Counted from the first letter of the stretch, positions 13,765-64,000 are shown. The stretch is DNA of 64,000 nucleotides from Piromyces finnis finn (GCA_002104945.1 MCFH01000055.1:186001-250000); one strand, 5' to 3'. Program-made: numbers and translations. Notes: generated from the letters alone by a model not told the origin.

Positions 13765-15555
13765 ATGATGTCAAATCAAACAAATATACTCGAAGCAGTG
13801 AATCAATTAAGATACTTCTTAAGTTCTGCTCACTTAAATTGGGCAGTAAATCAAACATTAAAACGTTTTCAATTGCCAAATGGTGAAACAATATCATGTG
13901 TCTATTGGAAAAATACTTTTTATATAACAGGTACTGATATTGTAAGATCCCTCGTCTTTCGTTTCCAAGCATACGGCAGGCCCGTAAAGAATATCAAAAA
14001 GTTTGAAGAGGGTATCTTTTCTGATTTAAGAAATTTAAAGCCAGGAGTTGATGCAATTTTAGAAGAACCAAGATCTGAATTTTTAGAAATGTTATATAAA
14101 AATAACTGTATCAGAACTCAAAAGAAGCAAAAAGTTTTCTTCTGGTTCTCAGTTCCACATGATCGCTTATTTATTGATGCTTTAGAACGTGATCATAAAA
14201 GAGAAGCCGAAGGTAAGGAACCTTCCACTGTTGCTCTTCAAAGTGCTCCACTCCTTGAAGCTATGGCAATGAATCCACAAACAAAAATACCAAATAATTT
14301 AAAACAATATTCCACTGCTTCTAATAAAGCTACTCTTCCATCTCAACAAAATACAAATAATGTTAATTATTATATAAATTCAAATGAAAGACCACAATTA
14401 CAACCAATCAATACAAATATTAGCCAAGATAAAGCCGTTAATATGAATTATCCAATGGTACAAACACAAGTTGTACAAATGGTACAACAACCAGTATATC
14501 AACAACAAATGTATACTCCAGTTCAAAATTCTACACCAGTATATAATAATACTCAATATGTTTTAACACAACCACAAAATAATCAAATGATGACTCCAAC
14601 TTCTGCAGTTGGTGTTGATCAAATGACTCCAACTATGAATAATGTACAAGTTGTTAGTTCTCCACAAATTATCACCTACCAACAAGGTCAAATAATAAAT
14701 AACCAAGTTACTCCAATCACTACTTATGCTCAAGAAGGGCTGGGCCAATCTGAAGTTAAGAGTGGTGAAATGATTAATACTCCAACTATGATTAACACTC
14801 CAATTGTATATACTACTGTAAGTTCATCTACCCAATCATCTCCAGATTCATTAGAAAGTGAAGAAATTGTATTTGGTGAACAAGAAAGTAAAGAAGAATA
14901 TATTTACACATGTGAAGTTAAGGGTTGTGGAAGAAAATTTAAGCGTGCAGAATTTTTAAGAAGACACCAACGTTGTCATAAGACTGATTCTGGATATGGA
15001 AAGGAAATGCTTCAACGTCAATCCAGTGTAAATAAGCTTAAAATCCAAACTCCATATATTATAAATACTCAATCTCAATACACTCCACAAACTGTTAGTT
15101 ACATTCCAAGTACTGGAATTTCTACTCCAATTTCTTCTAACCCAATAAATCAAATGCCATCACCACCAACTAATGACGTTAGTTACAATAATGTAATTAT
15201 TAAAAATGAAATGTGCAATCCAATTTCTCCAAATGAAACTAATGGTGCTTATTATGCAGGTGAAGTTAGTCCAGTCACTAGTAACCAAACTTCACCAATT
15301 ATTGTTACAACCGCTGGAGCTGTATACACTAGTAATGTTACTGTTACTACTTCTTCCCAAGCTGTTAATGGTAGTACATTATTCCCTTCTATTACTGAAA
15401 GTCAAACTACTTATGTTCAAACTCCAATAATTCAAACTGATTCTACTACCAGTGTTTGTCAAATGCCATCCCCACCACTTCAATATCAACCAAATTACAC
15501 ACAAGTAACATATCAATCACAACCAGTATACACTACAGCAACTCCAATTTATTAA
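13765..15555 (+). CDS. STE12: Ste12-like transcription factor (STE domain plus a single C2H2 zinc finger)
   Basis: STE domain signatures ITGTDIVR, KKFEEGIFSDLRNLK and CIRTQKKQKVFFWFSVPHD. One C2H2 finger, CEVKGCGRKFKRAEFLRRHQRCH. The CDS is intronless; there is a probable 5'UTR intron (GTAAGT 13685 ... TAG 13762). Confidence 0.95.
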   Translation: MMSNQTNILEAVNQLRYFLSSAHLNWAVNQTLKRFQLPNGETISCVYWKNTFYITGTDIVRSLVFRFQAYGRPVKNIKKFEEGIFSDLRNLKPGVDAILEEPRSEFLEMLYKNNCIRTQKKQKVFFWFSVPHDRLFIDALERDHKREAEGKEPSTVALQSAPLLEAMAMNPQTKIPNNLKQYSTASNKATLPSQQNTNNVNYYINSNERPQLQPINTNISQDKAVNMNYPMVQTQVVQMVQQPVYQQQMYTPVQNSTPVYNNTQYVLTQPQNNQMMTPTSAVGVDQMTPTMNNVQVVSSPQIITYQQGQIINNQVTPITTYAQEGLGQSEVKSGEMINTPTMINTPIVYTTVSSSTQSSPDSLESEEIVFGEQESKEEYIYTCEVKGCGRKFKRAEFLRRHQRCHKTDSGYGKEMLQRQSSVNKLKIQTPYIINTQSQYTPQTVSYIPSTGISTPISSNPINQMPSPPTNDVSYNNVIIKNEMCNPISPNETNGAYYAGEVSPVTSNQTSPIIVTTAGAVYTSNVTVTTSSQAVNGSTLFPSITESQTTYVQTPIIQTDSTTSVCQMPSPPLQYQPNYTQVTYQSQPVYTTATPIY

Positions 15556-46441: not shown

Positions 46442-48795
46442 CTAACAATCTTCAACAAAATCTTCTCTTGCCCAATCGGGTAAACTTGTTTTAAAACTCC
46501 AGGCATCCTCTAAAATGGTTGCATGTGAATTATAATTTTTATTTTCTGATGGCACTTCTTCTCCTGCCTTTGGTTTTTCTTCTTTTTCTTCTCCATCTTC
46601 TCCTTTTTTATTTTCACTCGATAACTGTTCTTCGGTTGTTGAATCAGTGCTACTATTACTTGAGTAAGAGTAAGCATGTAACCAAATACACATTTGATGT
46701 GGTTTTGGATCACTCTTAGGATGAATACAATCATCACAACTTTCAACAAACCATGATGGCTTTTCTTTTTCTTGATTAACATCATTTTGTGATGGATTTT
46801 GATCAGTTTCTTGTTTGTTTTCTGATTCATGGTTTTCTGTAGAAATTGACTTATTAGTATCAGGACATTCTAAATTTGGGAAACCCATTGCCATCATATT
46901 TCCAATGACTTTATCAATGCCTTCTTTATTTACACCGCCTTTACCACATTGTTGACCCCATATATCAGTATTGCAATAAAGAGGGTCATTTGCTATTGGA
47001 TAACCTATTACATGAGAAAAAGCCAACATATATTTGTAAATTTAACATGTTTTTTTTTTTTATTATTTTATTTTATTTTATTTTATTTTATTTTATTTTA
47101 TTTTATTTTATTTTATTTTATTTTATTTTATTTTATTTTATTTTATTTTATTTTATTTTATTTTATTTTATTTTATTTTATTTTATTTTATTTTATTTTA
47201 TTTTATTTTATTTTATTTTATTTTATTTTATTTTATTTTATTTATTTTATTTTATTTTATTTTATTTTATTTTATTTTATTTTATTTTATTTTATTTTAT
47301 TTTATTTTATTTTATTTTATTTTATTTTATTTTATTGGTTTTTTATTTAAATTTTATATATTTATATTTAAAAAGTATAAATATTATATATGTATTCAAA
47401 TATTTACCTAAATATTGTAAGTGAACTCGAATTTGATGGGTTCTTCCTGTTAATGGTTTACCTTTCATATATATATAAATATATATATATAAAAATGAAT
47501 AAATAAATTTTAACAATATAGGATTATCAAAAATACTCACATAATACCAAACTAGTTTTTCCATTAAAATGAAGTTTCTTAAATATTGTAGTGCATGGTT
47601 TTCCATCAGGTGAAACAGAATTTAAACCAAGTTTAAAAGATACAGTTAAAATTGGTTCATTACACACAATTTCTTCACTTTATTATAAAATATATATAAA
47701 TAAAAGTATAAAACTTTTCATAAATAACTACCCTAGATATATTTATATAAGAAGTAGAACTAAAATTGAATTTTAAATCTTACTCTGGAAAATTTCCTAC
47801 AACTCTAGCTAAATATTCTTTAAGAATTGTTTTATGCCTTAAATTATATTCCATTGCTTTTGCCCTTTCTGGATTTAAACAAATAATATTTAGTCCTGAA
47901 GTTAATCTATCTAAACGATTGGATGCTGATCAATGAATATGAATAAATTCCATTTTTATTTTAAAATTTTAAACCGAATTTTTTGAATTGATTTTGAAAA
48001 AGTGATTTTTAAATTATTTAATATATTTATAATAATTACATTTATTAGTATTTAAAGTTACATTACCCAATAAAAAAAGAAAAAGAAAAGAAAAATTAAT
48101 ATAGCAACTTACGATATAATTTTTTATAACCATATTCGTTCATTAAAATGTGTAATACTGTATTATGATTATATCTACCACTTGGATGAACTGGAATAGA
48201 AGAAGGTTTATTAATAATAAGAAAATCATCTGTTTTTTTGACAATTTCAATTTTTTGAGATGTAACTGGAGGTTCATGACGATGAATTGAATGTGACACA
48301 ACATCACCATTCTTTAACAAATAGTCGGGACTAACAATTTTATTATTGACCTTGATTTTTCCTGTTTCAATAGCTTTTTTCTTATTTATTTAAATAATTG
48401 AAATATAATTGAAATATTATAAAATTGAATTTACTAATTATTTTATTTTATTTTATTTTACTTTTTTATTTATTAAATTCTTTACATAATATTCGGGTGT
48501 ATGATCTTGAAATTCTTTACAGAATATACTATATATAGATTTTTCATACCAACGTCCTTTTGTAAATGTTTTGTAGGTAAAAAAGTAAGGTTGAACTTTT
48601 CTTAGCCCTTTTTAGATAATATTATCAGTATATTTTATTATTTTTTATGGTAAAAGAAATAAAGTTGTTTTTTCTTTTTTTTTTTTTTAAATTATACGTA
48701 TATATAAATAAGCAAGTAAAATTACCATTTTCAAAGTAATATTTCGCATTAGAAGGTGGTTCTTCATTATTGATATCTTTATAACTTAGATTTCT
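46442..48795 (-). CDS. RluA-family pseudouridine synthase (Rib2/Pus9/RPUSD2-like), multi-exon; true 5' end slightly upstream and unresolved
   Basis: Exons encode KVQPYFFTYKTF, HRHEPPV, INKPSSIPVHPSGRY, catalytic NRLDRLTSGL, KPLTGRTHQIRVHLQYLG and GYPIANDPLY. Confidence 0.9.
47066..47335. repeat. (TTTTA)n pentanucleotide repeat, about 54 units, in a pseudouridine synthase intron (47005-47407)
   Basis: Read directly; one 4-nt interruption. Confidence 0.97.
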
Positions 48796-49270: not shown

Positions 49271-49446
49271 CAGTATTTTTATATTAATATTGTAAAAGAA
49301 TAATAATTTTTTTTGTTAATTTTCAAATAATTATTTGGTATCTTAATTATATCTTACATTTAATTATAGTTTTTTTCTTTGTAATAATATTTTATACTTT
49401 AATATTCAATTATTAAAGTAAAGTTTTACTTTTCATTTTTTATAGT

Positions 49447-50526
49447 TTACCAACCAGCAATGTTTTTGTAAACATGAGATTTATCAACATTACCATTAAT
49501 ACCTTTAACAGAACCAGAAGAAGAGTATTGCCAAGCATCATATGAAGAAGTAGATGGACTATTGTTACTGTATTTAGCTACCCAAATGTAAGCACCAGCA
49601 TCAGTTAATTTCTTTAAATCAAGATTATCTCTAAACCAACTTTCAGAAGCGTAAACTCCAGCCTTGTAACCAAGAGCCTTAATCTTTTTAATGAAAGCAA
49701 CAGCACAATTTGTTCTAGTAGTTTTAGATAAACCATCAGCTCTTCCAGTATTACCTGATGCACCAGATAATTCAGAATCCCAAAAGATTGGGAAGTTGTT
49801 AGTCTTACCCTTTAAAAGAGTATTGACAACATAAGTAGCTTCAGCTTCAGCTTCGGCAGTAGTCTTAGCTTGAGTAAAGAAATAATAACCAATCTTTGTT
49901 TTTCCTTTGAAACCATTATAGTGAGTTTCTAAACTATCATCTTTTGCTAAATTACCAGCAGATCCATATCCTCTTATACCACAACGAAGAATAACACCAT
50001 CGATTTCTTTAGCAGCAGCAGCATAGTCAGTAACAACATTCCATTTAGAAAGATCAATAATTTCCTTTTGTTTAAATGTTGTTGGTTTAATAATAGTTGT
50101 AGTCTTCTTAGTGGTAGTTGTCTTTTTGGTAGTAGTAGTAGTCTTTTTAGTAGTAGTAGTCTTTTTAGTAGTAGTAGTTACTTTTGGAACACATAACTTT
50201 ACATTACTACTTCCTGGACATTGATTAGAGTAAAGAGTGTTTGAATTGGTTGGGCATTTGGAAACATTTTTGCAAACACCTGCTTTACTAAGGTTTGTAC
50301 CATTAGTAAGTTGTGTGACTTTCTTAACACAACATAAAATATTAGCTGGATCATTTTTACAATAGCCAGTATAAGTAGTTGCAGTACCTTTTTGACCACT
50401 TGACATTTTACATAAAGATTTATCTATACAAACACCTTCGCCTCCAGGGGCAGTACAAGGATCTTCAACTTTAGCAAGAGCTAATGGTACTAATAAAGTT
50501 AATAAGCATTTTAAATTTAAACGCAT
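49447..50526 (-). CDS. Secreted GH25 muramidase (lysozyme), type A: signal peptide + 2 Cys-rich repeats + Thr/Lys linker + GH25
   Basis: GH25 motifs IIDLSKWN, RCGIRGYG, GYYFFTQA, catalytic FWDSE (DxE), GRADGL, GYKAGVYAS, IWVAKY, AWQYSSSG and GINGNVD. Intronless. Confidence 0.92.
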   Translation of the reverse strand: MRLNLKCLLTLLVPLALAKVEDPCTAPGGEGVCIDKSLCKMSSGQKGTATTYTGYCKNDPANILCCVKKVTQLTNGTNLSKAGVCKNVSKCPTNSNTLYSNQCPGSSNVKLCVPKVTTTTKKTTTTKKTTTTTKKTTTTKKTTTIIKPTTFKQKEIIDLSKWNVVTDYAAAAKEIDGVILRCGIRGYGSAGNLAKDDSLETHYNGFKGKTKIGYYFFTQAKTTAEAEAEATYVVNTLLKGKTNNFPIFWDSELSGASGNTGRADGLSKTTRTNCAVAFIKKIKALGYKAGVYASESWFRDNLDLKKLTDAGAYIWVAKYSNNSPSTSSYDAWQYSSSGSVKGINGNVDKSHVYKNIAGW

Positions 50527-50606
50527 TTTTATTTTCTTTTTTTTTTTAGAAAAATATTCTGTGATTTTTTTATCTTTTCTTTTATTTATGTATAATTTAT
50601 ATAATT

Positions 50607-50718
50607 ATACTTTTTTTTTTTTTGTATTTAAAAAATTTTTAATAATTATACCTCTATTTATACTTTTTTTTTTTGTATTTAAAAAATTTTTAATAATTAT
50701 ACCTCTATTTATACTTTT
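50607..50718 (-). promoter_or_regulatory. About 51-bp tandem duplication carrying two TATAAATA boxes upstream of GH25 type A
   Basis: The unit ...GTATTTAAAAAATTTTTAATAATTATACCTCTATTTATAC occurs twice, placing TATAAATA on the minus strand at 50655-50662 and 50706-50713. The paralogous promoter at about 60343 has one copy. Promoter function is inferred. Confidence 0.5.
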
Positions 50719-51969
50719 TTTATATTATTGTTATTAGTAGTAACTTATTGGCAAAATATCATCTTCGAAAGTATTTCCCTTTATTAAAAGAATAGAATAT
50801 TCTTATTAATATAAAAATAATAATATTTAAAAATACTTACAATGGTTTATTCATATTATTTAATTTCAATCATTAATATTATTATTGTTTTTTTATAAAA
50901 ATATATATAGAATATATAATATATATAGTATATATAGTATTATTCATCTTTATTTTTTAATTCTATAATTTTAATAGTAAAACTATATAAAATATACTTT
51001 TCTTTTAATTATTAATGGTTAAAGGTAATTAAAAATTAAAAATTGGCTTTTTTTTATTAGATAATTAATCATTAAAATTATATTAAAATATTTATTATTA
51101 AATATATTTATAATTTATTTAATAAAAATAAGCTTTCTTGAAATTTGAGTAATAAGATCGGAGAGAAAATAACAATTTATTTGATAAAATAAAAAAAAAT
51201 AGTAATATTAAAAAATAGTATTAATAAAAAAAATAATTTTGATATAATGAATATTATGTTAATAAAAATAAAATGAAAAAAAAACTTTATCAAAACCATT
51301 TTCTTTAATAAAAAAAAAAACATCTACTTTTTAATAGAAAAAAACAATAAAAAAAAAAAAAAAAATCATTCGAAAATTTATTGGGACAATTAAATATAAA
51401 TTATTATTTTAATGACTAAGGTTTAATTAAAATAAAAACATAATTTTTTTTTAGTGTAACATTATATAATAATTCTATAAAACAAATAAAAATTAGTTTT
51501 TTTTAATATTATTATTATTATACTAATAATTTGACTTTTTTATAAAGCCACTTTACTTTTAATTATAAACTACTGTTTTAATAATAAAAAAGTATCAACT
51601 TACTATATAATAATTCAATAATACACTAAATATTTTATTTTATTAAAAAGATTTATTATTTAATTTTATTTTTATTTAATTTTTATTTAATTTTTATTTT
51701 TTTTATCAATTATAAAACCATTATTTAAATTTTTTTATTTAAAAAATAAAATTATAAAGTGTTTTTTTTAACTAGCAATATAAATACATAAATAATAAGC
51801 ATCATTAATTTCATTAATTTTTGATTTAATTATAAGACGAGGTGAGTATGGTTAATTACAATAATAATTTATAAGATTTATAATCCAAATTGTAACTATA
51901 AGAATTAACAATTTGGTTGAAATTATACATATTAATGAAAACTAATTATCATATATTTTATATTACAGT

Positions 51970-53052
51970 TTACCAACCAGCAATGTTTTTGTAAACATGA
52001 GATTTATCAACATTACCATTAATACCTTTAACAGAACCAGAAGAAGTATATTGCCAAGCATCATACGAAGAAGTAGATGGACTACTGCTGCTGTATTTAG
52101 CTACCCAAATGTAAGCACCAGCATCAGTTAATTTCTTTAAATCAAGATTATCTCTAAACCAACTTTCAGAAGCGTAAACTCCAGCCTTGTAACCAAGAGC
52201 CTTAATCTTTTTAATGAAAGCAACAGCACAATTTGTTCTAGTAGTTTTAGATAAACCATCAGCTCTTCCAGTATTACCTGATGCACCAGATAATTCAGAA
52301 TCCCAAAAGATTGGGAAGTTGTTGGTCTTACCCTTTAAAAGAGTATTGACAACATAAGTAGCTTCAGCTTCAGCTTCGGCAGTAGTCTTAGCTTGAGTAA
52401 AGAAATAATAACCAATCTTTGTTTTTCCTTTGAAACCATTATAGTGAGTTTCTAAACTATCATCTTTTGCTAAATTACCAGCAGATCCATATCCTCTTAT
52501 ACCACAACGAAGAATAACACCATCGATTTCTTTAGCGGCTGCTGCATAGTCAGTAACAACATTCCATTGAGAAATATCAATAATTTCCTTTTGTTTAAAT
52601 GTTGTTGGTTTAATAATAGTTGTAGTCTTCTTAGTGGTAGTAGTAGTCTTTTTAATAGTTGTCTTTTTAGTCGTAGTTTTTGATTTTGGTACACATAATT
52701 TAACATTATTAGTTCCTGGGCATTCATAAGTATTAATTAATGTATTAAAAGTTGTTGAACACTTTGAAACATTTAAACAACGACCAGTAGCACCAAGAGC
52801 TTGACCACTTCTAAGTGTAGTAACCTTTTTAATACAACAAATAACATTATCTGGATCATTTGGACATGGCCAATTTGGAGCTGAACCAGCATATTTAATA
52901 GCTGAACCTTTTTGACTACCATACATTATACAATCGGTATCTTTAACACACACACCTTCACCATAGGAACCACCATTACATGGTTGATCAATATAAGCAA
53001 GTGCAGTTGGAACTGCTAATAAACTTAATAAATATTTTATATTAAAATGCAT
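51970..53052 (-). CDS. Secreted GH25 muramidase, type B (different Cys-rich module, near-identical catalytic domain)
   Basis: Same architecture as type A; the catalytic domain differs from A at only about 5 residues; intronless. Confidence 0.92.
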   Translation of the reverse strand: MHFNIKYLLSLLAVPTALAYIDQPCNGGSYGEGVCVKDTDCIMYGSQKGSAIKYAGSAPNWPCPNDPDNVICCIKKVTTLRSGQALGATGRCLNVSKCSTTFNTLINTYECPGTNNVKLCVPKSKTTTKKTTIKKTTTTTKKTTTIIKPTTFKQKEIIDISQWNVVTDYAAAAKEIDGVILRCGIRGYGSAGNLAKDDSLETHYNGFKGKTKIGYYFFTQAKTTAEAEAEATYVVNTLLKGKTNNFPIFWDSELSGASGNTGRADGLSKTTRTNCAVAFIKKIKALGYKAGVYASESWFRDNLDLKKLTDAGAYIWVAKYSSSSPSTSSYDAWQYTSSGSVKGINGNVDKSHVYKNIAGW

Positions 53053-54093
53053 TTTATTTTTTATTTAAATTTTTAACTATATTTTTAATATTAATTTATT
53101 TTATATTTATTCTATTTTATATATATTCTATTTTTTATTTATTCTATTTTTTATTTTTTTATTTTTTTTTTTTTTTTTGAATAAAAAAATTTTGCAGAAA
53201 ATATCTTTATTTATATTAATTCTATCCACGTTGAATAATTCTTAACGCCAATATATATTTTTATTTTATTTCCATTATTCATTATTAGCTATTCATTTTA
53301 TTTAATTTCATTCATTAATATTATACTTGTAACTTCCATAAAATGGTTAATATTATTCTTTTAAACAAACAAAAAAAGAAATAATAATTAAACCTTAAAT
53401 AATATACTTTAACTAGTGGTGTTACACTTTTGAAATTTTTATAAAAATAAAATTTAATTAATCTATTAATTTAATAAATTAAATTTTCAAGATTTTTTAA
53501 TAGAAAATATTAAATAAATAGAACATTCTTTCTATTTAATAAAATATTAAATGTATCATAATATTTATTTACAATAAGCATTATATAGCTTTTATTAATA
53601 TTCTTTTAAAATAAAATAATAAAGCTATTTATATAATTATCAAAATTTCTTTTTATATAAATATTTTAATACAATGGATGTTGCACTATCAAAAGTAGCA
53701 GGAAGGTTCACTATAATAAATTTAAACTTAATAAAGTAATTCAGTATAATGTTTTTAAAAATAATTATATTGATAAAAATTTTAATGGTTAATCAATTTA
53801 ATTATTAAAATCAAAATTTTAAATTTTATTGAAAAAAAAAAATGTATGGAATATAATTTTCTTTCATTAATTATTCAATATTCCATTAGTATGGTCACCT
53901 TAAATAATTTAAATTTAGCATATAATAAAAATTACATAAATTTTTAAAGTAAACTTAATTGAATTTCTATAAAAAAAATAAAAAAGAAATTAAATAGCTT
54001 TGACACTACAATTTATTATTTAGCATGAATTAGCATGAAATAATAGCTTCAACTTTTTTTAATGGAGTAGTTGAGACTTTTATTTATTGATAC

Positions 54094-54682
54094 ATATATT
54101 TAAAATATTTAAAAATAAATTTAAAACTTAAAAATTAAGAATTTTTAATAAATAAATTAAACAAAACTGAATAAAAATAGGATATAATATATTTTAGTAA
54201 TTTTAATTAAAGTTAAAAGGCCATTATTGCATCTATTACATTAAAACAATAATTAATATTTTACTTTCAATTGGACTTGGCGTCAAAAAAATAAAGTTTT
54301 GTTAGTGGAAAAAATTATGTTCTGCATTGGGTAGTGGGGGAGGGAAAATCCTGTCTTACTGTTTCTTCAGCAATGATATCAATCATATCCTTTCCAATCT
54401 TTTGATATTTAACGATGAAACAATTATATGTTTTTAAACAGTATATACTAAAATCAGGAAATCAAAATAAAACTATTTGAATTTTTATTAAAAAATAAAA
54501 ATGAATATTATTTATTTACATAATAAAATGTAGCAGCTTAAATATTATAAGTCGATTTTAGAGTTATTTATTTTTAATATATTTTATTAATTTAAATATA
54601 TATATATGTAACATATTTATGAAGTTATATTGAATTACTTTTCTATTTTATACATTTTTTTTACATTTTATTTTATTTTATT

Positions 54683-54717
<35 letters not shown>

Positions 54718-55827
54718 GTTATTTTATTATTTTATTATTTTATTGTATTGTATTATTATTAATATTAATAATTTATTTTATTTTATTCAACTTTGTTTTA
54801 TTATATTCTATTTTATTAAATCTACCTTATATACTTTATTTCATTTCATTTTATCTTATTTTATTTCTAATAATTCAGTTTTTAGTTTGGAACACATAAT
54901 TTAACATTATCGCTTCCTGGACATTCGGCGGTATTAACTAAGTAATGATTTTTGGTTGAGCAGTTAGAAACATTTAAACAACGACCAGTCTTCTTAAGTA
55001 CTATTCCACTTTTAAGAGTAGAAACCTTCTTAACACAGCAAATAACATCATCTGGGTCATTTGGACATGGCCATCTTGAAGAAGTACCAGCATATTTATA
55101 AACTGAACCTTTTTGATTACTGTACATTTTACAATCAGAGCTTTTAATACAGACACCTTCACCATGAATAATATCAGTTTTACATGGTTCATCAATGTAA
55201 GCAAGGGCAGCTGGAACGGCTAATAAAGCTAATAAGTATTTTAAGTTGAATTGCATTTTGTAATTTTAATTTTAATTTTTTTTTTTCTTTTTAGTTTATA
55301 TTAATTTTTTAATTATATTTTATTTATTTGATTTGATTTAAAAAAAAAGTTTATTGAAAATTGTTCTTATTTATACTAATTTCGCCATTATTAAATTATA
55401 TTCAAAAAGGTTACTAAAAGTTATTTGATAATATATAAAACTCTTTTAATTTCTATTAAAGTTTAGTTATTTATCAATCACTTATTTTATTTAGTTTCAC
55501 TTATTAATTTCGTTGCTATTATTTTCATAATCTTTAATAATACGGTTAGTATTATTCTACTAATTTCTAATTTTTATAATAAAAAAGTAATTAATGTTAT
55601 TTTATTGTTCTTGTAAGTAAAATAAGTAAAATATACCTAATCAAGAACCTTAAATAATATTCTTTAAACATTAATATTATTTAAAGTTTTGGTAATTGTT
55701 TTTTGTTTGTTTGCTTTGTTTTCTTGTTTATAAGAATAATGTTAACAATTCTTATGAAGATTAATAAAATAATATTAATTAACAGAAGTTAAATAAAATA
55801 AATAATTAATAAATTACCAAACTGAAT
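54094..55827. repeat. Left arm of a 1734-bp near-perfect inverted repeat
   Basis: Mirrored ORF coordinates all sum to 112684 with identical translations. Boundaries were read by eye; one mismatch seen (55812/56872). Confidence 0.93.
54882..55256 (-). CDS. Secreted Cys-rich protein, type C: stand-alone copy of the GH25 N-terminal module without linker or enzyme
   Basis: Signal peptide MQFNLKYLLALLAVPAALA and 10 Cys with the same spacing pattern as types A/B; stops at VKLCVPN*. Confidence 0.85.
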   Translation of the reverse strand: MQFNLKYLLALLAVPAALAYIDEPCKTDIIHGEGVCIKSSDCKMYSNQKGSVYKYAGTSSRWPCPNDPDDVICCVKKVSTLKSGIVLKKTGRCLNVSNCSTKNHYLVNTAECPGSDNVKLCVPN

Positions 55828-56856
55828 TTTTAATAATTCTAATTGGTCTACCAATTAAATTTAATTAATTCGATTAAATCTAAATTATTAAGTTTGATTA
55901 ATGAAAAGTATACATGGAATATGGAATATGGAATATTAGATAATCTTTTCATTAACTATTCAATTAAACTATTCGATTCAACTATTCGATATTCAATATT
56001 CCATTAGTATTACCAAGTTAAAATAATTTAAATTGACCATATAATAAAAATTAATTATTGTTATTATTTTGTTTATTCGCAACGATTTTTAAAGTAAAAT
56101 TTATTGATAAAAATGATATATAAAAATAAAAAAGGAAATTAAATGTTTTAATTATTTAATATTCTTAAATAGTAAAGTTTAATGAATTAATTTTTTATTA
56201 TATAGAAAGAAAGAAATAATAACCCTAAATATTTTAAAAATACTCCCAATTCTAAAGTATGAAACAATAAATTATTTCTATTATTGTTGACCTAGTTATT
56301 ACCTATCTAGTATTATTCATCAATAATTTTTTTGGAATATTTCATAAAAATATAAACTTTATTCTTTGCATTATAAATAACAAAAATTGATCGACCATAT
56401 AAGTAGTTCTTTTATTCCCACTTTTAAAAGAAGAAAAGTAATAAAGTTCAAAACTTTGATTTTTTGTATATAAGGTAAAACAGAAATTAAATTAATTATT
56501 AATTAAAAACTTTAATTATTATGAGAGTTACATAAGAATACATAAAATTAAAATTATACTTATGAGTTAACGTGATCAAAAATAATGAGGCGCAATAAAA
56601 TTCACAAAAAATTAAGATTTCATATATTAAAGAAGTATAAATTTTATTTTAATCTATAGAATTGTATATTTTGCTATATGGCTGGTAAACATTCAGGTTA
56701 TTGATACAATACTTAAAGTTTTAAGATTACACAATAATACTAAATAAATTAATATTTTTAATTAATGTGAATAAATTATTTAAATATTAAAAATTCACAT
56801 ATTTAATTAGATATATGATACATTTAATTATTATTGTTAGAATTTTGGTAGATTTT

Positions 56857-57966
56857 ATTCAGTTTGGTAATATATTAATTATTTATTTTATTTAACTTCT
56901 GTTAATTAATATTATTTTATTAATCTTCATAAGAATTGTTAACATTATTCTTATAAACAAGAAAACAAAGCAAACAAACAAAAAACAATTACCAAAACTT
57001 TAAATAATATTAATGTTTAAAGAATATTATTTAAGGTTCTTGATTAGGTATATTTTACTTATTTTACTTACAAGAACAATAAAATAACATTAATTACTTT
57101 TTTATTATAAAAATTAGAAATTAGTAGAATAATACTAACCGTATTATTAAAGATTATGAAAATAATAGCAACGAAATTAATAAGTGAAACTAAATAAAAT
57201 AAGTGATTGATAAATAACTAAACTTTAATAGAAATTAAAAGAGTTTTATATATTATCAAATAACTTTTAGTAACCTTTTTGAATATAATTTAATAATGGC
57301 GAAATTAGTATAAATAAGAACAATTTTCAATAAACTTTTTTTTTAAATCAAATCAAATAAATAAAATATAATTAAAAAATTAATATAAACTAAAAAGAAA
57401 AAAAAAAATTAAAATTAAAATTACAAAATGCAATTCAACTTAAAATACTTATTAGCTTTATTAGCCGTTCCAGCTGCCCTTGCTTACATTGATGAACCAT
57501 GTAAAACTGATATTATTCATGGTGAAGGTGTCTGTATTAAAAGCTCTGATTGTAAAATGTACAGTAATCAAAAAGGTTCAGTTTATAAATATGCTGGTAC
57601 TTCTTCAAGATGGCCATGTCCAAATGACCCAGATGATGTTATTTGCTGTGTTAAGAAGGTTTCTACTCTTAAAAGTGGAATAGTACTTAAGAAGACTGGT
57701 CGTTGTTTAAATGTTTCTAACTGCTCAACCAAAAATCATTACTTAGTTAATACCGCCGAATGTCCAGGAAGCGATAATGTTAAATTATGTGTTCCAAACT
57801 AAAAACTGAATTATTAGAAATAAAATAAGATAAAATGAAATGAAATAAAGTATATAAGGTAGATTTAATAAAATAGAATATAATAAAACAAAGTTGAATA
57901 AAATAAAATAAATTATTAATATTAATAATAATACAATACAATAAAATAATAAAATAATAAAATAAC

Positions 57967-58001
<35 letters not shown>

Positions 58002-58590
58002 AATAAAATAAAATAAAATGTAAAAAAAATGTATAAAATAGAAAAGTAATTCAATATAACTTCATAAATATGTTACATATATATATATTTAAATTAATAA
58101 AATATATTAAAAATAAATAACTCTAAAATCGACTTATAATATTTAAGCTGCTACATTTTATTATGTAAATAAATAATATTCATTTTTATTTTTTAATAAA
58201 AATTCAAATAGTTTTATTTTGATTTCCTGATTTTAGTATATACTGTTTAAAAACATATAATTGTTTCATCGTTAAATATCAAAAGATTGGAAAGGATATG
58301 ATTGATATCATTGCTGAAGAAACAGTAAGACAGGATTTTCCCTCCCCCACTACCCAATGCAGAACATAATTTTTTCCACTAACAAAACTTTATTTTTTTG
58401 ACGCCAAGTCCAATTGAAAGTAAAATATTAATTATTGTTTTAATGTAATAGATGCAATAATGGCCTTTTAACTTTAATTAAAATTACTAAAATATATTAT
58501 ATCCTATTTTTATTCAGTTTTGTTTAATTTATTTATTAAAAATTCTTAATTTTTAAGTTTTAAATTTATTTTTAAATATTTTAAATATAT
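56857..58590. repeat. Right arm of the 1734-bp inverted repeat (spacer 55828-56856, 1029 bp)
   Basis: Reverse complement of 54094-55827. Confidence 0.93.
57428..57802 (+). CDS. Secreted Cys-rich protein, type C' (identical inverted copy of 54882-55256)
   Basis: Identical 124-aa translation; transcribed divergently from type C. Confidence 0.85.
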   Translation: MQFNLKYLLALLAVPAALAYIDEPCKTDIIHGEGVCIKSSDCKMYSNQKGSVYKYAGTSSRWPCPNDPDDVICCVKKVSTLKSGIVLKKTGRCLNVSNCSTKNHYLVNTAECPGSDNVKLCVPN

Positions 58591-59120
58591 AGTTATAATT
58601 TCAATTAAAATAATAATAAAAATTTTAAAATATTTGCTAAAGTTCAAAAAATAGAGAAATGGATGTAATGGTGTTAAAAAATATTTAAATTTCATGTTTC
58701 CGTTAAATTATAAATATTTATTTTTCCAAATTTTATTATTATCAAAAAAGATTAGTTACTATATAATTATTGTTAATAAAAAACATATTAAATTTTAATA
58801 AAAAAAAAATACACCATTAATCATGCATAATATAATATATTATAGAATATTAGATCTTTTCTTAATATCAAATTTTATTATAAAAAATGTGTTTTTATAA
58901 TATTTTTTATAAAAATATTTGTTTTTTATTTTTTTTACTTTTTGATTATAAAATGTACAAATGTATAAATGTATTATAACATTATAATATATTTAACATT
59001 TTTATGATACATTATTTAATATTAATTAATATTAATAAGTATTTTTTATGATTATTAAATTTCATTATTACTTATAATAAAAGAATTATCGAAATACTTA
59101 AAAAAAAATCAATAGATTTT

Positions 59121-60200
59121 TTACCAACCAGCAATGTTTTTGTAAACATGAGATTTATCAACATTACCATTAATACCTTTAACAGAACCAGAAGAAGAGT
59201 ATTGCCAAGCATCATATGAAGAAGTAGATGGACTATTGTTACTGTATTTAGCTACCCAAATGTAAGCACCAGCATCAGTTAATTTCTTTAAATCAAGATT
59301 ATCTCTAAACCAACTTTCAGAAGCGTAAACTCCAGCCTTGTAACCAAGAGCCTTAATCTTTTTAATGAAAGCAACAGCACAATTTGTTCTAGTAGTTTTA
59401 GATAAACCATCAGCTCTTCCAGTATTACCTGATGCACCAGATAATTCAGAATCCCAAAAGATTGGGAAGTTGTTAGTCTTACCCTTTAAAAGAGTATTGA
59501 CAACATAAGTAGCTTCAGCTTCAGCTTCGGCAGTAGTCTTAGCTTGAGTAAAGAAGTAATAACCAATCTTTGTTTTTCCTTTGAAACCATTATAGTGAGT
59601 TTCTAATTTATCATCCTTTGCTAATGAACCAGAAGAGCCATATCCTCTATAACCACAACGAAGGATAACACCATCGATTTCTTTAGCAGCAGCAGAATAA
59701 TCATTAACAACATTCCATTTAGAAAGATCAATAATTTCCTTTTGTTTAAATGTTGTTGGTTTAATAATAGTTGTAGCCTTCTTAGTGGTAGTTGTCTTTT
59801 TGGTAGTAGTAGTAGTCTTTTTAGTAGTAGTAGTCTTTTTAGTAGTAGTAGTTACTTTTGGAACACATAACTTTACATTACTACTTCCTGGACATTGATT
59901 AGAGTAAAGAGTGTTTGAATTGGTTGGGCATTTGGAAACATTTTTGCAAACACCTGCTTTACTAAGGTTTGTACCATTAGTAAGTTGTGTGACTTTCTTA
60001 ACACAACATAAAATATTAGCTGGATCATTTTTACAATAGCCAGTATAAGTAGTTGCAGTACCTTTTTGACCACTTGACATTTTACATAAAGATTTATCTA
60101 TACAAACACCTTCGCCTCCAGGGGCAGTACAAGGATCTTCAACTTTAGCAAGAGCTAATGGTACTAATAAAGTTAATAAGCATTTTAAATTTAAACGCAT
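59121..60200 (-). CDS. Secreted GH25 muramidase, type A' (paralog of 49447-50526)
   Basis: Identical to A except 7 residues: one in the linker and six clustered at the start of the GH25 domain (NDYS...GYRGYGSSGSLAKDDK). Confidence 0.92.
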   Translation of the reverse strand: MRLNLKCLLTLLVPLALAKVEDPCTAPGGEGVCIDKSLCKMSSGQKGTATTYTGYCKNDPANILCCVKKVTQLTNGTNLSKAGVCKNVSKCPTNSNTLYSNQCPGSSNVKLCVPKVTTTTKKTTTTKKTTTTTKKTTTTKKATTIIKPTTFKQKEIIDLSKWNVVNDYSAAAKEIDGVILRCGYRGYGSSGSLAKDDKLETHYNGFKGKTKIGYYFFTQAKTTAEAEAEATYVVNTLLKGKTNNFPIFWDSELSGASGNTGRADGLSKTTRTNCAVAFIKKIKALGYKAGVYASESWFRDNLDLKKLTDAGAYIWVAKYSNNSPSTSSYDAWQYSSSGSVKGINGNVDKSHVYKNIAGW

Positions 60201-61869
60201 TTTTATTTTCTTTTTTTTTCTAGAAAAATATTATATGTTCTTTTTTTTTATTTTATTACTATAAAATTAATATAATTATTTTATTATTATTATTTACAAT
60301 TATAATATTTCTTATTTTAAAATTTTTTAACAATTATACCTCTATTTATACTTATTTTTATTAATAATATGTTATTTTCATATGAATATTCCTTATCTTC
60401 ATTGAAAATATATAATAAATATATTATTTTTATTTTAAATTAAAAAGTTTTTCTTGATATATTTAAAAATAAAAATGGTTTGATAATTATTCATATTATT
60501 TAATTTCAATCATTAATATTGTTCTAATTATTTTTAAAAATATATATAGTATATATAGTATTATTCATCTTTATTTTTTAATTCTATAATTTTAATAGTA
60601 AAACTATATAAAATATACTTTTCTTTTAATTATTAATGGTTAAAGGTAATTAAAAATTAAAAATTGGCTTTTTTTTATTTAGATAATTAATCATTAAAAT
60701 TATATTAAAATATTTATTATTAAATATATTTATAATTTATTTAATAAAAATAAGCTTTCTTGAAATTTGAGTAATAAGATCGGAGAGAAAATAACAATTT
60801 ATTTGATAAAATAAAAAAAAATAGTAATATTAAAAAATAGTATTAATAAAAAAAATAATTTTGATATAATGAATATTATGTTAATAAAAATAAAATGAAA
60901 AAAAAAACTTTATCAAAACCATTTTCTTTAATAAAAAAAAAAAACATCTACTTTTTAATAGAAAAAAACAATAAAAAAAAAAAAAAAAATCATTCGAAAA
61001 TTTATTGGGACAATTAAATATAAATTATTATTTTAATGACTAAGGTTTAATTAAAATAAAAACATAATTTTTTTTTTACATTTTCTATTTATAGATTTTA
61101 GTGTAACATATTATAAAAATGTATTTATAAACGTTTTAGGAGAGGTTTTAATTTACTTTTAATGAATTTCATTATTTTAATTATTTGTTGTTTTATGATC
61201 TATAGTACATATTTCTATAATATTATGATAATTTTCCTATTTCTAATAAACGATATAAAAAGTATAATAAAATATTATTTAAATTTAATTATTAGGTATT
61301 TCTAGTATTTCTAATATTTTCAATGTATCAGTTGTTTAGATATTATGAACTATTATTACATTTATTATTTAATTTATATTTTATTATTATTTCATATCAA
61401 AATAAAAATTAGTTTTCAATAATGAAAAAATAATATTATACTAAATTGACTTATTAAAATAATAGTTTTTTATAAACTATTATTTTAATAATAAAAAAGT
61501 ATCATAATTTACTATATAATAATTCAATAATACACTAAATATTTTATTTTATTAAAAAGATTTATTATTTAATTTTATTTTTATTTAATTTTTATTTAAT
61601 TTTTATTTTTTTTATCAATTATAAAACCATTATTTAAATTTTTTTATTTAAAAAATAAAATTATAAAGTGTTTTTGTCAACTAGCAATATAAATACATAA
61701 ATATTAAGCATCATTAATTTCTGATTTAATTATAAGACGAAGTGAGTATGGTTAATTACAATAATAATTTATAAGATTTATAATCCAAATTGTAACTATA
61801 AGAATTAACAATTTGGTTGAAATTATACATATTAATGAAAACTAATTATCATATATTTTATATTACAGT

Positions 61870-62952
61870 TTACCAACCAGCAATGTTTTTGTAAACATGA
61901 GATTTATCAACATTACCATTAATACCTTTAACAGAACCAGAAGAAGTATATTGCCAAGCATCATACGAAGAAGTAGATGGACTACTGCTGCTGTATTTAG
62001 CTACCCAAATGTAAGCACCAGCATCAGTTAATTTCTTTAAATCAAGATTATCTCTAAACCAACTTTCAGAAGCGTAAACTCCAGCCTTGTAACCAAGAGC
62101 CTTAATCTTTTTAATGAAAGCAACAGCACAATTTGTTCTAGTAGTTTTAGATAAACCATCAGCTCTTCCAGTATTACCTGATGCACCAGATAATTCAGAA
62201 TCCCAAAAGATTGGGAAATTGTTGGTCTTACCCTTTAAAAGAGTATTGACAACATAAGTAGCTTCAGCTTCAGCTTCGGCAGTAGTCTTAGCTTGAGTAA
62301 AGAAATAATAACCAATCTTTGTTTTTCCTTTGAAACCATTATAGTGAGTTTCTAAACTATCATCTTTTGCTAAATTACCAGCAGATCCATATCCTCTTAT
62401 ACCACAACGAAGAATAACACCATCGATTTCTTTAGCAGCAGCAGCATAGTCAGTAACAACATTCCATTGAGAAATATCAATAATTTCCTTTTGTTTAAAT
62501 GTTGTTGGTTTAATAATAGTTGTAGTCTTCTTAGTGGTAGTAGTAGTCTTTTTAATAGTTGTCTTTTTAGTCGTAGTTTTTGATTTTGGTACACATAATT
62601 TAACATTATTAGTTCCTGGGCATTCATAAGTATTAATTAATGTATTAAAAGTTGTTGAACACTTTGAAACATTTAAACAACGACCAGTAGCACCAAGAGC
62701 TTGACCACTTCTAAGTGTAGTAACCTTTTTAATACAACAAATAACATTATCTGGATCATTTGGACATGGCCAATTTGGAGCTGAACCAGCATATTTAATA
62801 GCTGAACCTTTTTGACTACCATACATTATACAATCGGTATCTTTAACACAGACACCTTCACCATAGGAACCACCATTACATGGTTGATCAATATAAGCAA
62901 GTGCAGTTGGAACTGCTAATAAACTTAATAAATATTTTATATTAAAATGCAT
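61870..62952 (-). CDS. Secreted GH25 muramidase, type B' (paralog of 51970-53052)
   Basis: Protein identical to B; the few nucleotide differences seen are synonymous. Confidence 0.92.
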   Translation of the reverse strand: MHFNIKYLLSLLAVPTALAYIDQPCNGGSYGEGVCVKDTDCIMYGSQKGSAIKYAGSAPNWPCPNDPDNVICCIKKVTTLRSGQALGATGRCLNVSKCSTTFNTLINTYECPGTNNVKLCVPKSKTTTKKTTIKKTTTTTKKTTTIIKPTTFKQKEIIDISQWNVVTDYAAAAKEIDGVILRCGIRGYGSAGNLAKDDSLETHYNGFKGKTKIGYYFFTQAKTTAEAEAEATYVVNTLLKGKTNNFPIFWDSELSGASGNTGRADGLSKTTRTNCAVAFIKKIKALGYKAGVYASESWFRDNLDLKKLTDAGAYIWVAKYSSSSPSTSSYDAWQYTSSGSVKGINGNVDKSHVYKNIAGW

Positions 62953-64000
62953 TCTTAAGAATTTTTTTCTATTAAATTTCTTATATTTTTAAAAATTTTT
63001 TATTTTCTTTTTACTAAAAAATATATATATATATAAGGATCTATATCTATATTTATAATATTTTCTACTTTATTATTTACTGCTTTAACTCAAATAAACC
63101 AATAATATTTATTTATTAAAGTTATAATTTTCTTATTACATTATATTTATTTTTAGTTATATCATTCAACTTTGATATGTTTATTACAATTTAAGCTTCA
63201 CTAATATATAATTTATAAATTTTTTTGTATAAAAATTAAAATTTAAATTATTAAAACAAGCAACAAATGAACGATAATTTCTTTAATATATTAAAATTAT
63301 GAAAAGATAAAGATAAATTATTGGCAATTAAATTAATAAAAAATAGAAATACTCTTTTCTTATATTATTATAGTAATTTAAAAAAAAATTATTTGATTTT
63401 TTATTTATATAAAGTAAATATAAATTTTAAAATTATTTATATTCTAACCCTATTGTTGTTAAATATTTTAAATAATAATCTACTTAGCATAGAACATTAT
63501 ATTAACAATATATACAGACAGACAACATAATTTATATGTTGACATAATATTGAATGTTATTATATTATCAAATAAAAAATATTCATTATATAAAAAAAGA
63601 AAAAGAATTGATACACTGTTAATTTTTATTTTATTTTTTTTATAACTTTATCATCAAAAATAATTCTATTAATAGAATTACTAATAAAACTATTAAAATC
63701 AATATTTAATATATATATTTTTACGATTAATAGAAAATATATTTTGTTTTTATAATCTAATTCATAATTATATTCATTATTAAATTTAAAAGTTATGATT
63801 TCAAAATGTACCAGTAATCAAATACTATAAATATACATAATAGGTATTATGGATAAGAAATTTAAATATTGAGTTTTTTAACAAACAAGCAAAACAAACA
63901 AAAAAATATTACATCATTTGTATTAACAGACAACTATTCAAGGAGAAACAATAATAGAAAATAGAAAAGGCAACTAAAAATAGGAATATATTTCAATCAA

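Follow-up and report, generated by a model that had tools for sequence, protein, structure and literature searches.

A probable gene-converting cluster of modular muramidases, with a bacterial-type GH25 domain and a eukaryotic Cys-rich module, in the gut fungus Piromyces finnis

The subject of this report is a stretch of 64,000 nt from the fungus Piromyces finnis (MCFH01000055.1:186001-250000), hereafter called the window, and more precisely a cluster of six genes found at positions 49447-62952. Four of these genes (A, B, A' and B') encode a signal peptide, a module rich in cysteine (Cys), a Thr/Lys linker and a GH25 domain, and the two others (C and C') encode the signal peptide and the module only. 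The cluster is read here, with good but not full confidence, as a gene-converting set of secreted modular muramidases in which a GH25 domain derived from the Bacillota is coupled to a eukaryotic module directed at the bacterial envelope. On this reading, an ancestor of the gut fungi would have acquired GH25 once, from a Lachnospiraceae-like bacterium or its phage. A two-lobed, disulfide-rich eukaryotic module, placed at the N-terminus, would replace the wall-binding SH3b, LysM or CW_7 domains of the bacterial enzymes and would bring this endolysin-type enzyme onto the bacterial envelope from the outside, the targets being live or dead rumen bacteria. Two lineages of the module, short (A) and long (B and C), would have been kept apart, the enzyme halves being homogenized by conversion. 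Genes C and C' would be enzyme-less derivatives of a B-like gene, probably producing free binding or defensin-like proteins.

Organization of the cluster

A first-pass annotation, made from the DNA alone, had proposed the six genes together with their structures and positions. These were all recovered as uninterrupted open reading frames (ORFs; n = 6) by an ORF search combined with Pfam. The features of the cluster are listed below.

49447-50526 (-): gene A, ORF of 359 aa; signal peptide (aa 1-18), short-type 10-Cys module (aa 19-115, nt 50182-50472), Thr/Lys linker (aa 116-149) and GH25 domain (aa 150-359, nt 49450-50079).
51970-53052 (-): gene B, 360 aa; signal peptide, long-type 10-Cys module (aa 20-123, nt 52684-52995), Thr/Lys linker and GH25 domain (aa 151-360).
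54882-55256 (-): gene C, 124 aa; signal peptide and long-type 10-Cys module only.
57428-57802 (+): gene C', 124 aa; protein and coding sequence (CDS) identical to those of C, inverted, head to head.
59121-60200 (-): gene A', 359 aa; copy of A, Pfam GH25 match with E 9.3e-22.
61870-62952 (-): gene B', 360 aa; copy of B with 5 synonymous differences.
49440-53109: copy 1 of the duplication unit, bearing A and B (self-blastn and direct repeat families D1-D9).
59114-63013: copy 2 of the duplication unit, bearing A' and B', in direct orientation relative to copy 1.
54094-55827: left arm of an inverted repeat, bearing C (repeat search; blastn 99.94%).
55828-56856: spacer between the arms, 1029 nt, AT-rich, with no ORF of note.
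56857-58590: right arm of the inverted repeat, bearing C' (repeat search, blastn).

The six genes reduce to three types, each present in two copies of recent origin. The B and B' proteins are identical, as are those of C and C', and A differs from A' at 7 residues. The two units bearing A-B and A'-B' align by self-blastn in three blocks of about 96-99% identity separated by intergenic indels. The arms of the inverted repeat, 1734 nt each, contain a single mismatch, at position 55812. The order of the genes, B then A, is old, since a B-type gene followed 1.3 kb downstream by an A-type gene is also found on L081, another gut-fungal contig (GC 18%).

A GH25 domain of bacterial type

In A, B and A', Pfam assigned residues ~157-344 to Glyco_hydro_25 (PF01183), the match covering the entire model (1-180/180), with scores of 78-80 bits for a cut-off of 27 (E 1.2e-21 for A and 3.9e-22 for B). 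It is the sole Pfam family found on these three proteins at E <= 1; neither a dockerin nor any other Pfam domain was detected, in agreement with the first-pass annotation. The motifs IID(L/I)S, WDSE and NVDKS are present in all four GH25 genes. Residues D158, D250, E252 and D348 lie on invariant or nearly invariant columns that are common with the bacterial-like relatives, and the earlier statement that the catalytic residues are intact was thus upheld. By reference to Cpl-1 and cellosyl, these positions are taken to be the catalytic Asp (D158), the DxE motif (D250-S-E252) and the C-terminal Asp (D348) of GH25 enzymes. Gene A could moreover be aligned over its full length with 13 homologues of the same architecture.

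The structural model of the full-length A protein has a predicted local distance difference test score (pLDDT) of 82, and most ten-residue blocks of its GH25 domain reach a mean pLDDT of 81-98. When this domain was searched with Foldseek, the best matches were LytC (2ww5, E 5e-14), the phiSM101 endolysin (4kru) and cellosyl (1jfx). The matches 2ww5, 4kru, 1jfx, 4jz5, 2x8r and 6zm8 range from E 5e-14 to 3e-8, and the GH25 structures from Dikarya (2x8r and 6zm8) rank below the first three. At the sequence level, the PDB matches of the domain were confined to Firmicute and phage endolysins, the Dikarya GH25 muramidases being absent at E <= 0.01. Each protein of the cluster opens with a hydrophobic, signal-like N-terminus ending in ALA, which predicts secretion. 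The Thr/Lys linker of the four GH25 genes, ~27-34 residues long, is modelled with low confidence. The modules carry a charge of +3 to +7 and the linker +9, for a total of +17 to +23 in the mature protein (+23 in A) and an isoelectric point of ~9.3-9.5.

A protein search with A returned many metagenome proteins having the same architecture over their full length (46-69% identity), followed by gut-fungal GH25 proteins, one of them from Piromyces sp. E2, in which the module is replaced by a bacterial SH3_3 domain. Lower in the ranking came bacterial-like GH25 proteins carrying LysM, CW_7, M23 or PG_binding domains, with 42-51% identity over the GH25 domain. A genome scan with the fungal GH25 domain found no bacterial locus. 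When P0033, one of the bacterial-like relatives, served as the query, 80 genome loci were obtained, almost all of them from Lachnospiraceae or from unclassified Bacillota/Clostridia. They include Butyrivibrio, Acetatifactor and Roseburia, many are metagenome-assembled genomes from rumen or gut, and they are 37-47% identical to the GH25 domain of the window. In a GH25 tree of 122 rows, the 31 gut-fungus-like domains form one clade (Shimodaira-Hasegawa-like approximate likelihood ratio test, 96), nested among bacterial-like sequences and adjoining a Lachnospiraceae clade. A phage collection yielded distant endolysins only (<=41% identity), with no specific donor phage.

By these comparisons, the GH25 domain is of the bacterial type. 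The single nested clade of gut-fungal domains, together with the Firmicute and phage matches in the PDB, supports a single acquisition from a bacterium of the Bacillota or from a phage. The fusion of a bacterial-type GH25 domain to a Cys-rich module, put forward in the first-pass annotation, agrees with the Pfam, tree and structure matches, and the module is of non-bacterial type.

Gene conversion between the enzyme halves

The catalytic domains of A and B are 97.6% identical, while their modules share only 52.6% of residues (52.6% also for A/C and 65.4% for B/C), so that the three module versions initially distinguished are real. The near-identity of the enzymes had at first been taken as a constant-enzyme, variable-module system. 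The identity itself stands, but its cause appears to be different. The synonymous divergence (dS) between A and B decreases from 0.90 in the module, where the nonsynonymous divergence (dN) is 0.37, to ~0.39 in the signal peptide and linker and to 0.053 in GH25. Furthermore, the 17 nucleotide and 7 aa differences between A and A' are all contained in one 222-nt tract (CDS 424-645), nearly all of them inside the GH25 domain; over the whole of this domain, A and B show 12 differences, versus 28 for A' and B.

The phylogenies describe the same mosaic. In the module tree, the short type found in A makes up one clade (support 97), whose 12 members have several origins; the remainder is the long type of B and C, the nearest relative of the B module being P0012 (79%). 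In the GH25 tree, short, long and SH3-type N-termini are interleaved, and 6-7 changes are needed for each. On the basis of the dS contrast, the A/A' tract and the scattering of module types over the GH25 tree, the near-identity of the catalytic halves bears the sequence signature of gene conversion or recombination. The idea of a constant enzyme kept by selection was dropped on the same three grounds. The mosaic indicates two old module lineages carried on catalytic halves that have been repeatedly homogenized or exchanged within genomes. That the module lineages have nevertheless not merged would be due to selection in favour of their differences.

The Cys-rich module

The module comprises ~100 residues with 10 invariant Cys and belongs to no Pfam family. 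CLIP (PF12032) was the only family matched by several members, always below the cut-off (4 of 16 module sequences, best E 0.0067, none for C of the window). An AlphaFold model obtained with 16 sequences is all-beta, with a pLDDT of 89.9 and a predicted template modeling score of 0.82. The fold is confidently modelled as two-lobed, with a tentative likeness to CLIP and beta-defensins. A Foldseek search of the PDB with this model gave nothing meaningful, and the module profile gave chance-level matches only against PDB sequences. An exhaustive search with VIA retained two of 48,161 PDB chains at Z >= 2, an oyster big defensin and human beta-defensin 4 (6qbk and 5ki9), with Z values of 2.0-2.1 that are near noise.

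The Cys residues of lobe 1 follow the spacing C-x8-C-x5-C-x16-21-C-x8-CC, which we take to be the six-Cys pattern of beta-defensins and CLIP domains. The first-pass annotation had described the module as two Cys-rich repeats, and this description receives weak support. The two halves can be aligned with their Cys in register (hhalign, E 0.004), and the second half contains 4 Cys, being devoid of exactly C1 and C5. In beta-defensins and CLIP domains the Cys are paired C1-C5, C2-C4 and C3-C6, and the joint absence of C1 and C5 would be expected under such a pairing.

The possibility that the module is the SH3-like wall-binding domain known from other fungal enzymes was considered and rejected. 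No sequence match was found, nor any match by Foldseek or VIA although the PDB includes this domain, and the alignment of P0115 with 8b2s is confined to the GH24 part.

Partner enzymes of the module across fungi

A profile of the module was searched against 1.84 billion protein cluster representatives, of which 52 matched. In these proteins, the module is associated with GH25, with GH108 and PG_binding_3, with GH24 (Phage_lysozyme), with a GH73 glucosaminidase and NlpC/P60, with NlpC/P60 alone, with Phage_lysozyme2 and Peptidase_M15_3, with SH3_3 or with Chitin_bind_1. Except for Chitin_bind_1, all of these domains act on peptidoglycan or bind to it. The named members originate from Piromyces finnis and Anaeromyces robustus, and are called Peptidase C39-like, NlpC/P60 or lysozyme-like in UniRef. 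The GH24 member of P. finnis is closest to bacterial or phage GH24 enzymes with choline-binding or SH3_3 domains, which designates it as a second transferred enzyme placed on the module. The wider pattern is therefore the reverse of the constant enzyme with varying modules that had been proposed at first: across gut fungi, as judged from domain assignments, one module family is found on many wall-degrading enzymes.

Searches with predicted structures extend the distribution further. The same predicted fold is seen N-terminal to Basidiomycota GH24, to Ascomycota VldE/ARB_07466 and to Peptidase_C39_2 proteins, as well as in an NlpC/P60 cluster whose few taxon-labelled members are Mucoromycota. 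For the Basidiomycota GH24 proteins, the predicted N-termini align with the module at a template modeling score (TM) of 0.56-0.63 over ~82 residues, in a comparison of structures only. In the same manner, the predicted structure of AFDB A8P7Y8, judged from its accession to be a Coprinopsis cinerea protein, gives a TM of 0.52. Distant matches to the profile came from a dictyostelid, with a protein containing ~11 single repeats, and from an insect, with a CLIP-like repeat protein (E 1e-9).

The module occupies the position at which the bacterial relatives carry SH3b, LysM or CW_7. In addition, GH25 domains that are closely related bear at their N-terminus now the Cys module, now SH3_3. This alternation of SH3b and module on sister enzymes suggests an envelope-targeting role for the module.

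Three other members of the family deserve mention. P0105 is a module without enzyme that ends in a C-terminal hydrophobic segment resembling a membrane or glycosylphosphatidylinositol anchor, P0273 associates the module with SH3_3 without any enzyme, and P0106 shows, by eye, an SH3-like tail. These proteins would be binding-only or surface-anchored forms.

A different account of the module would make it an antimicrobial, defensin-like effector acting on membranes or lipid II, with A and B as bifunctional proteins and C and C' as stand-alone effectors. This account, which overlaps with the targeting role preferred here, is regarded as possible without being likely. It agrees with the lobe 1 pattern given above, with the identity of the only two PDB chains at Z >= 2, with the presence of Defensin_beta clusters among language-model neighbors and with the positive net charge of the modules in the cluster. 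The recurrence of free modules in gut fungi and the presence of C among RNA contigs point in the same direction. The VIA scores are nevertheless near noise, the net charge across the family ranges from -10 to +11, unlike that of typical cationic peptides, and the module alternates on the same enzymes with SH3b, which is a binding domain. The precedent of C. cinerea can be invoked on both sides: its defensin-like proteins (DLPs) are induced by bacteria, whereas the antibacterial assays described in the available part of the source cover the lysozymes and Copsin paralogues and not the DLPs (PMC6461984).

A regulatory or stabilizing pro-domain comparable to the arthropod CLIP was also envisaged, and appears improbable. 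The enzyme would be latent until the Lys-rich linker is cut, and the module would have no bacterial ligand. The sub-threshold CLIP matches are recurrent, the profile reaches the insect CLIP-like repeat protein, and the module is always N-terminal and precedes a flexible, low-confidence, Lys-rich linker; its five predicted disulfides would suit the protease-rich rumen. Such a function leaves unexplained, however, the stand-alone modules, the enzyme-less proteins combining module and SH3b, and the maintenance of two distinct module lineages despite gene conversion. Moreover, GH25 endolysins need no activation.

The enzyme-less genes C and C'

The first-pass annotation had treated the module-only genes as real. 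This view is confirmed by their intact ORFs and by RNA evidence, which consists here of the shares of sampled words found in the contigs of runs labelled RNA. For C, the contigs of run X2 contain every sampled word and those of X4 a share of 0.78. A 6-kb stretch has a share of ~30% in the RNA contigs, matching its coding fraction.

The stop codon of C comes directly after CVPN, one codon past the last module residue, and no remnant of GH25 was detected downstream by tblastn. The homology between C and B continues for ~15 nt past this stop, into a possible similarity with the linker. This region is AT-rich, and the alignment would fit a deletion of 1 nt. Of the other genes, B is the closest to C (65% identity, dS 0.47), and C has retained its start codon, its signal peptide and all 10 Cys. 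Stand-alone modules, or modules joined to SH3b, also occur in other gut-fungal sequences. On L081, positions 4942-5311 hold an A-type gene converted into a module-only ORF by an internal deletion, next to an intact B-type gene. In that case, the module is cut just before its last CPG...C segment, with an out-of-frame join to GH25 residues ~202-220. So free modules would arise repeatedly by loss of the enzyme half.

It could be argued that C and C' are what remains of a B-like gene after truncation, without any function, that the count of six genes is inflated by a very recent duplication or an assembly artefact, and that the real unit is reduced to B and A. This is considered unlikely. The decayed A-type gene of L081 is a precedent for such a leftover, and the best other stand-alone matches to C are only 46-56% identical and possess extra tails, no close stand-alone orthologue being found. 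C and C' are identical within a near-perfect inverted repeat that is known from the assembly alone, and B is separated from B' by just 5 synonymous changes. Conversely, C keeps its start, signal peptide and 10 Cys despite a dS of 0.47, its dN/dS relative to B (0.50) is close to the value of 0.41 between the enzyme-linked A and B modules, and its sampled words are all found in the X2 contigs. A palindromic assembly artefact is also an unlikely simple explanation of the locus, because the A'-B' unit is in direct orientation instead of being mirrored, is ~4% divergent from A-B and differs from it by intergenic indels. All in all, C looks functional but young, and being still intact and transcribed, C and C' probably act as free binding or defensin-like proteins. 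The part of co-effector or decoy, which the first-pass annotation gave to the free modules, would be one possibility for C.

An (ATA/TAA)n microsatellite is located at 54690-54760, ~130 nt downstream of the stop of C, and is mirrored at 57925-57995 for C'; a poly-Tyr ORF of 89 aa, which it creates on the opposite strand, is spurious. As for the database entries, the 114-aa P0100 coincides with A from the N-terminus as far as CVP, and the 225-aa P0006 begins within the linker of B, both coming from a contig that also carries the proteins of the window. Existing gene calls therefore seem to split the lysozyme genes at the Thr/Lys linker, and some module-only entries may be artefacts, for instance the partial P. 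finnis proteins ORX49607 and ORX49609, which flank the lysozyme ORX49608 by accession number.

Biological role of the cluster

Since the partner domains of the module are peptidoglycan hydrolases or wall-binding domains, these sequences are naturally read as having an antibacterial or bacteriolytic role. The enzymes could alternatively serve nutrition, with amino sugars and peptides drawn from the walls of dead bacteria and no killing of competitors, a purpose to which we would give a minor share of the probability. Feeding of fungi on dead bacteria by means of wall-binding domains has been suggested by the authors of the GH24/GH184 study (PMC10394673), and in pure cultures of Orpinomyces the GH25 transcripts vary with the substrate supplied for growth (PMC4672494). 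Sequence does not tell killing from scavenging, though, and the cationic charge and the defensin-like module fit an action on live cells equally well. The lysozymes of C. cinerea are induced by live bacteria (PMC6461984).

Several points weigh against the overall picture of Bacillota-derived muramidases guided by a eukaryotic module. The bacterial donor comes from a quick-search tree in which the nearest bacterial-like sequences are unnamed metagenome proteins. The role of the module is deduced from domain association and analogy, and the activity, secretion and binding of the proteins encoded by A to C' are predictions. The likeness to beta-defensins and CLIP is weak (VIA Z ~2; CLIP E 0.0067 in 4/16 sequences). 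Finally, C may be a young relic, as no close stand-alone orthologue was found for it.

A broader proposal can be made tentatively, with less confidence than the preceding picture. The CLIP/beta-defensin-like module would be a pan-fungal, outside-in adaptor for at least seven phage or bacterial hydrolase families, its lineages setting the target range by recognizing different surface ligands and its free forms acting as effectors.

Relation to known systems

The closest precedent for this design is the lysozyme family of Coprinopsis cinerea. Kombrink et al. (2019, PMC6461984) describe LYS1-5, which are composed of a defensin-like N-terminal domain, a linker and a GH24 domain, are induced by bacteria and lyse them, along with the free defensin-like proteins DLP1-10. 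In both systems, the signal peptide is followed by an N-terminal Cys-rich domain of ~100 residues and then by a linker, and a lysozyme of phage or bacterial type occupies the C-terminus; both include stand-alone Cys-rich paralogues, expanded and clustered families and a proposed antibacterial role. They differ by the catalytic family (GH25 here, GH24 in C. cinerea), by the number of conserved Cys (10 instead of 12) and by the fold, predicted here to be all-beta and two-lobed instead of a cysteine-stabilized alpha-beta defensin. In gut fungi, moreover, no fewer than six further hydrolase families carry the module. When the GH24 search was carried out with P0115, the best matches were bacterial or phage GH24.

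A second precedent is the wall-binding domain of fungal GH24/GH184 enzymes, an SH3 fold of 73 residues with two disulfides (2023, PMC10394673). This domain binds cells, and its removal from a fungal GH24 lowers the activity (PMC10394673). Like the present module, it is an N-terminal, non-catalytic part of fungal muramidases, and it occurs on amidases, C40, M23 and GH73 as well; the module, for its part, has no sequence or structural match to it. The logic of module walking used in that work applies equally to the module described here.

With the endolysins and autolysins of Bacillota and their phages (LytC, Cpl-1/Cpl-7, phiSM101 Psm), the cluster has in common the GH25 fold, the motifs and the combination of a catalytic with a wall-targeting domain. 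It departs from them by a putative targeting domain that is eukaryotic, disulfide-rich and N-terminal, by a eukaryotic signal peptide and a Thr/Lys linker, and by its place on a fungal chromosome. Horizontal transfer of GH25 into eukaryotes (Metcalf et al. 2014, PMC4241558) and domestication of NlpC/P60 by Trichomonas vaginalis (bioRxiv 10.1101/320382) have been reported. Here too, a bacterial peptidoglycan hydrolase would have been domesticated by a eukaryote living among bacteria; unlike in those transfers, the domain has been refitted with a host-derived module common to many independently acquired hydrolases. The arthropod CLIP domain (PF12032), beta-defensins and big defensins resemble the module by the six-Cys spacing of lobe 1. 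The module is distinct from all of them, no member passing the Pfam cut-off and lobe 2 having 4 Cys, and from CLIP by its partners, which are peptidoglycan hydrolases and not serine proteases; kinship and convergence would both account for the resemblance.

In the literature searched on anaerobic fungi, GH25 genes figure only as counts in enzyme tables (PMC4672494, PMC7142291), and a phage-tail lysozyme of P. finnis is mentioned as having a function that is not clear (bioRxiv 10.1101/2021.12.02.471044). The same searches brought up no account of the module. The first-pass annotation had left open whether the system is undescribed. The general design is already known from Coprinopsis, and what differs is the catalytic family, the 10-Cys two-lobed module, the wider range of partners and the mosaic record. 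The module itself appears to be undescribed in gut fungi.

Genomic context

The nearest named homologues belong to Piromyces, Orpinomyces and Anaeromyces, and the host is of the anaerobic gut fungus type, Neocallimastigomycota-like. Bacterial contamination was excluded by the eukaryotic nature of the neighboring ORFs (copia-type reverse transcriptase/integrase, STE12-like factor, P4-ATPase, TCTP and condensin Cnd1) and by the base composition of the window, which is very AT-rich throughout (GC 13-29% per 2-kb windows).

Other features of the window were recorded at a distance from the cluster. Close to the window start, an uninterrupted ORF at 42-4427 (+) encodes a 1461-aa polyprotein of the Ty1/copia type with Pol_BBD, integrase core, SH3_retrovirus and RVT_2 domains, and may be part of a retrotransposon active in the recent past. 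At 13765-15555 (+), a 596-aa ORF has an STE-like transcription factor domain (E 4e-56) and, by eye, a C2H2 zinc-finger-like stretch and long low-complexity regions rich in Gln, Thr and Pro; it has the appearance of a Ste12 homologue without introns. At 46950-47430 (+), a 10-nt unit is repeated in tandem and reads as FILFY repeats in two frames; this array lies immediately downstream of the ORF at 46442-47029 (-), for which Pfam gave no match.

Significance

Anaerobic gut fungi live among rumen bacteria, and their means of acting on these bacteria are almost unstudied. The locus has the appearance of an organized arsenal, in which transferred catalytic domains of bacteria or phages would have been refitted with one common fungal disulfide-rich module. 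If this module does direct the enzymes to bacterial surfaces, it would offer engineered lysins and feed enzymes a novel domain for wall targeting, as well as a handle by which new hydrolase families could be reached by module walking. The cluster would then also provide a natural case in which gene conversion and selection are opposed on the two halves of a gene.

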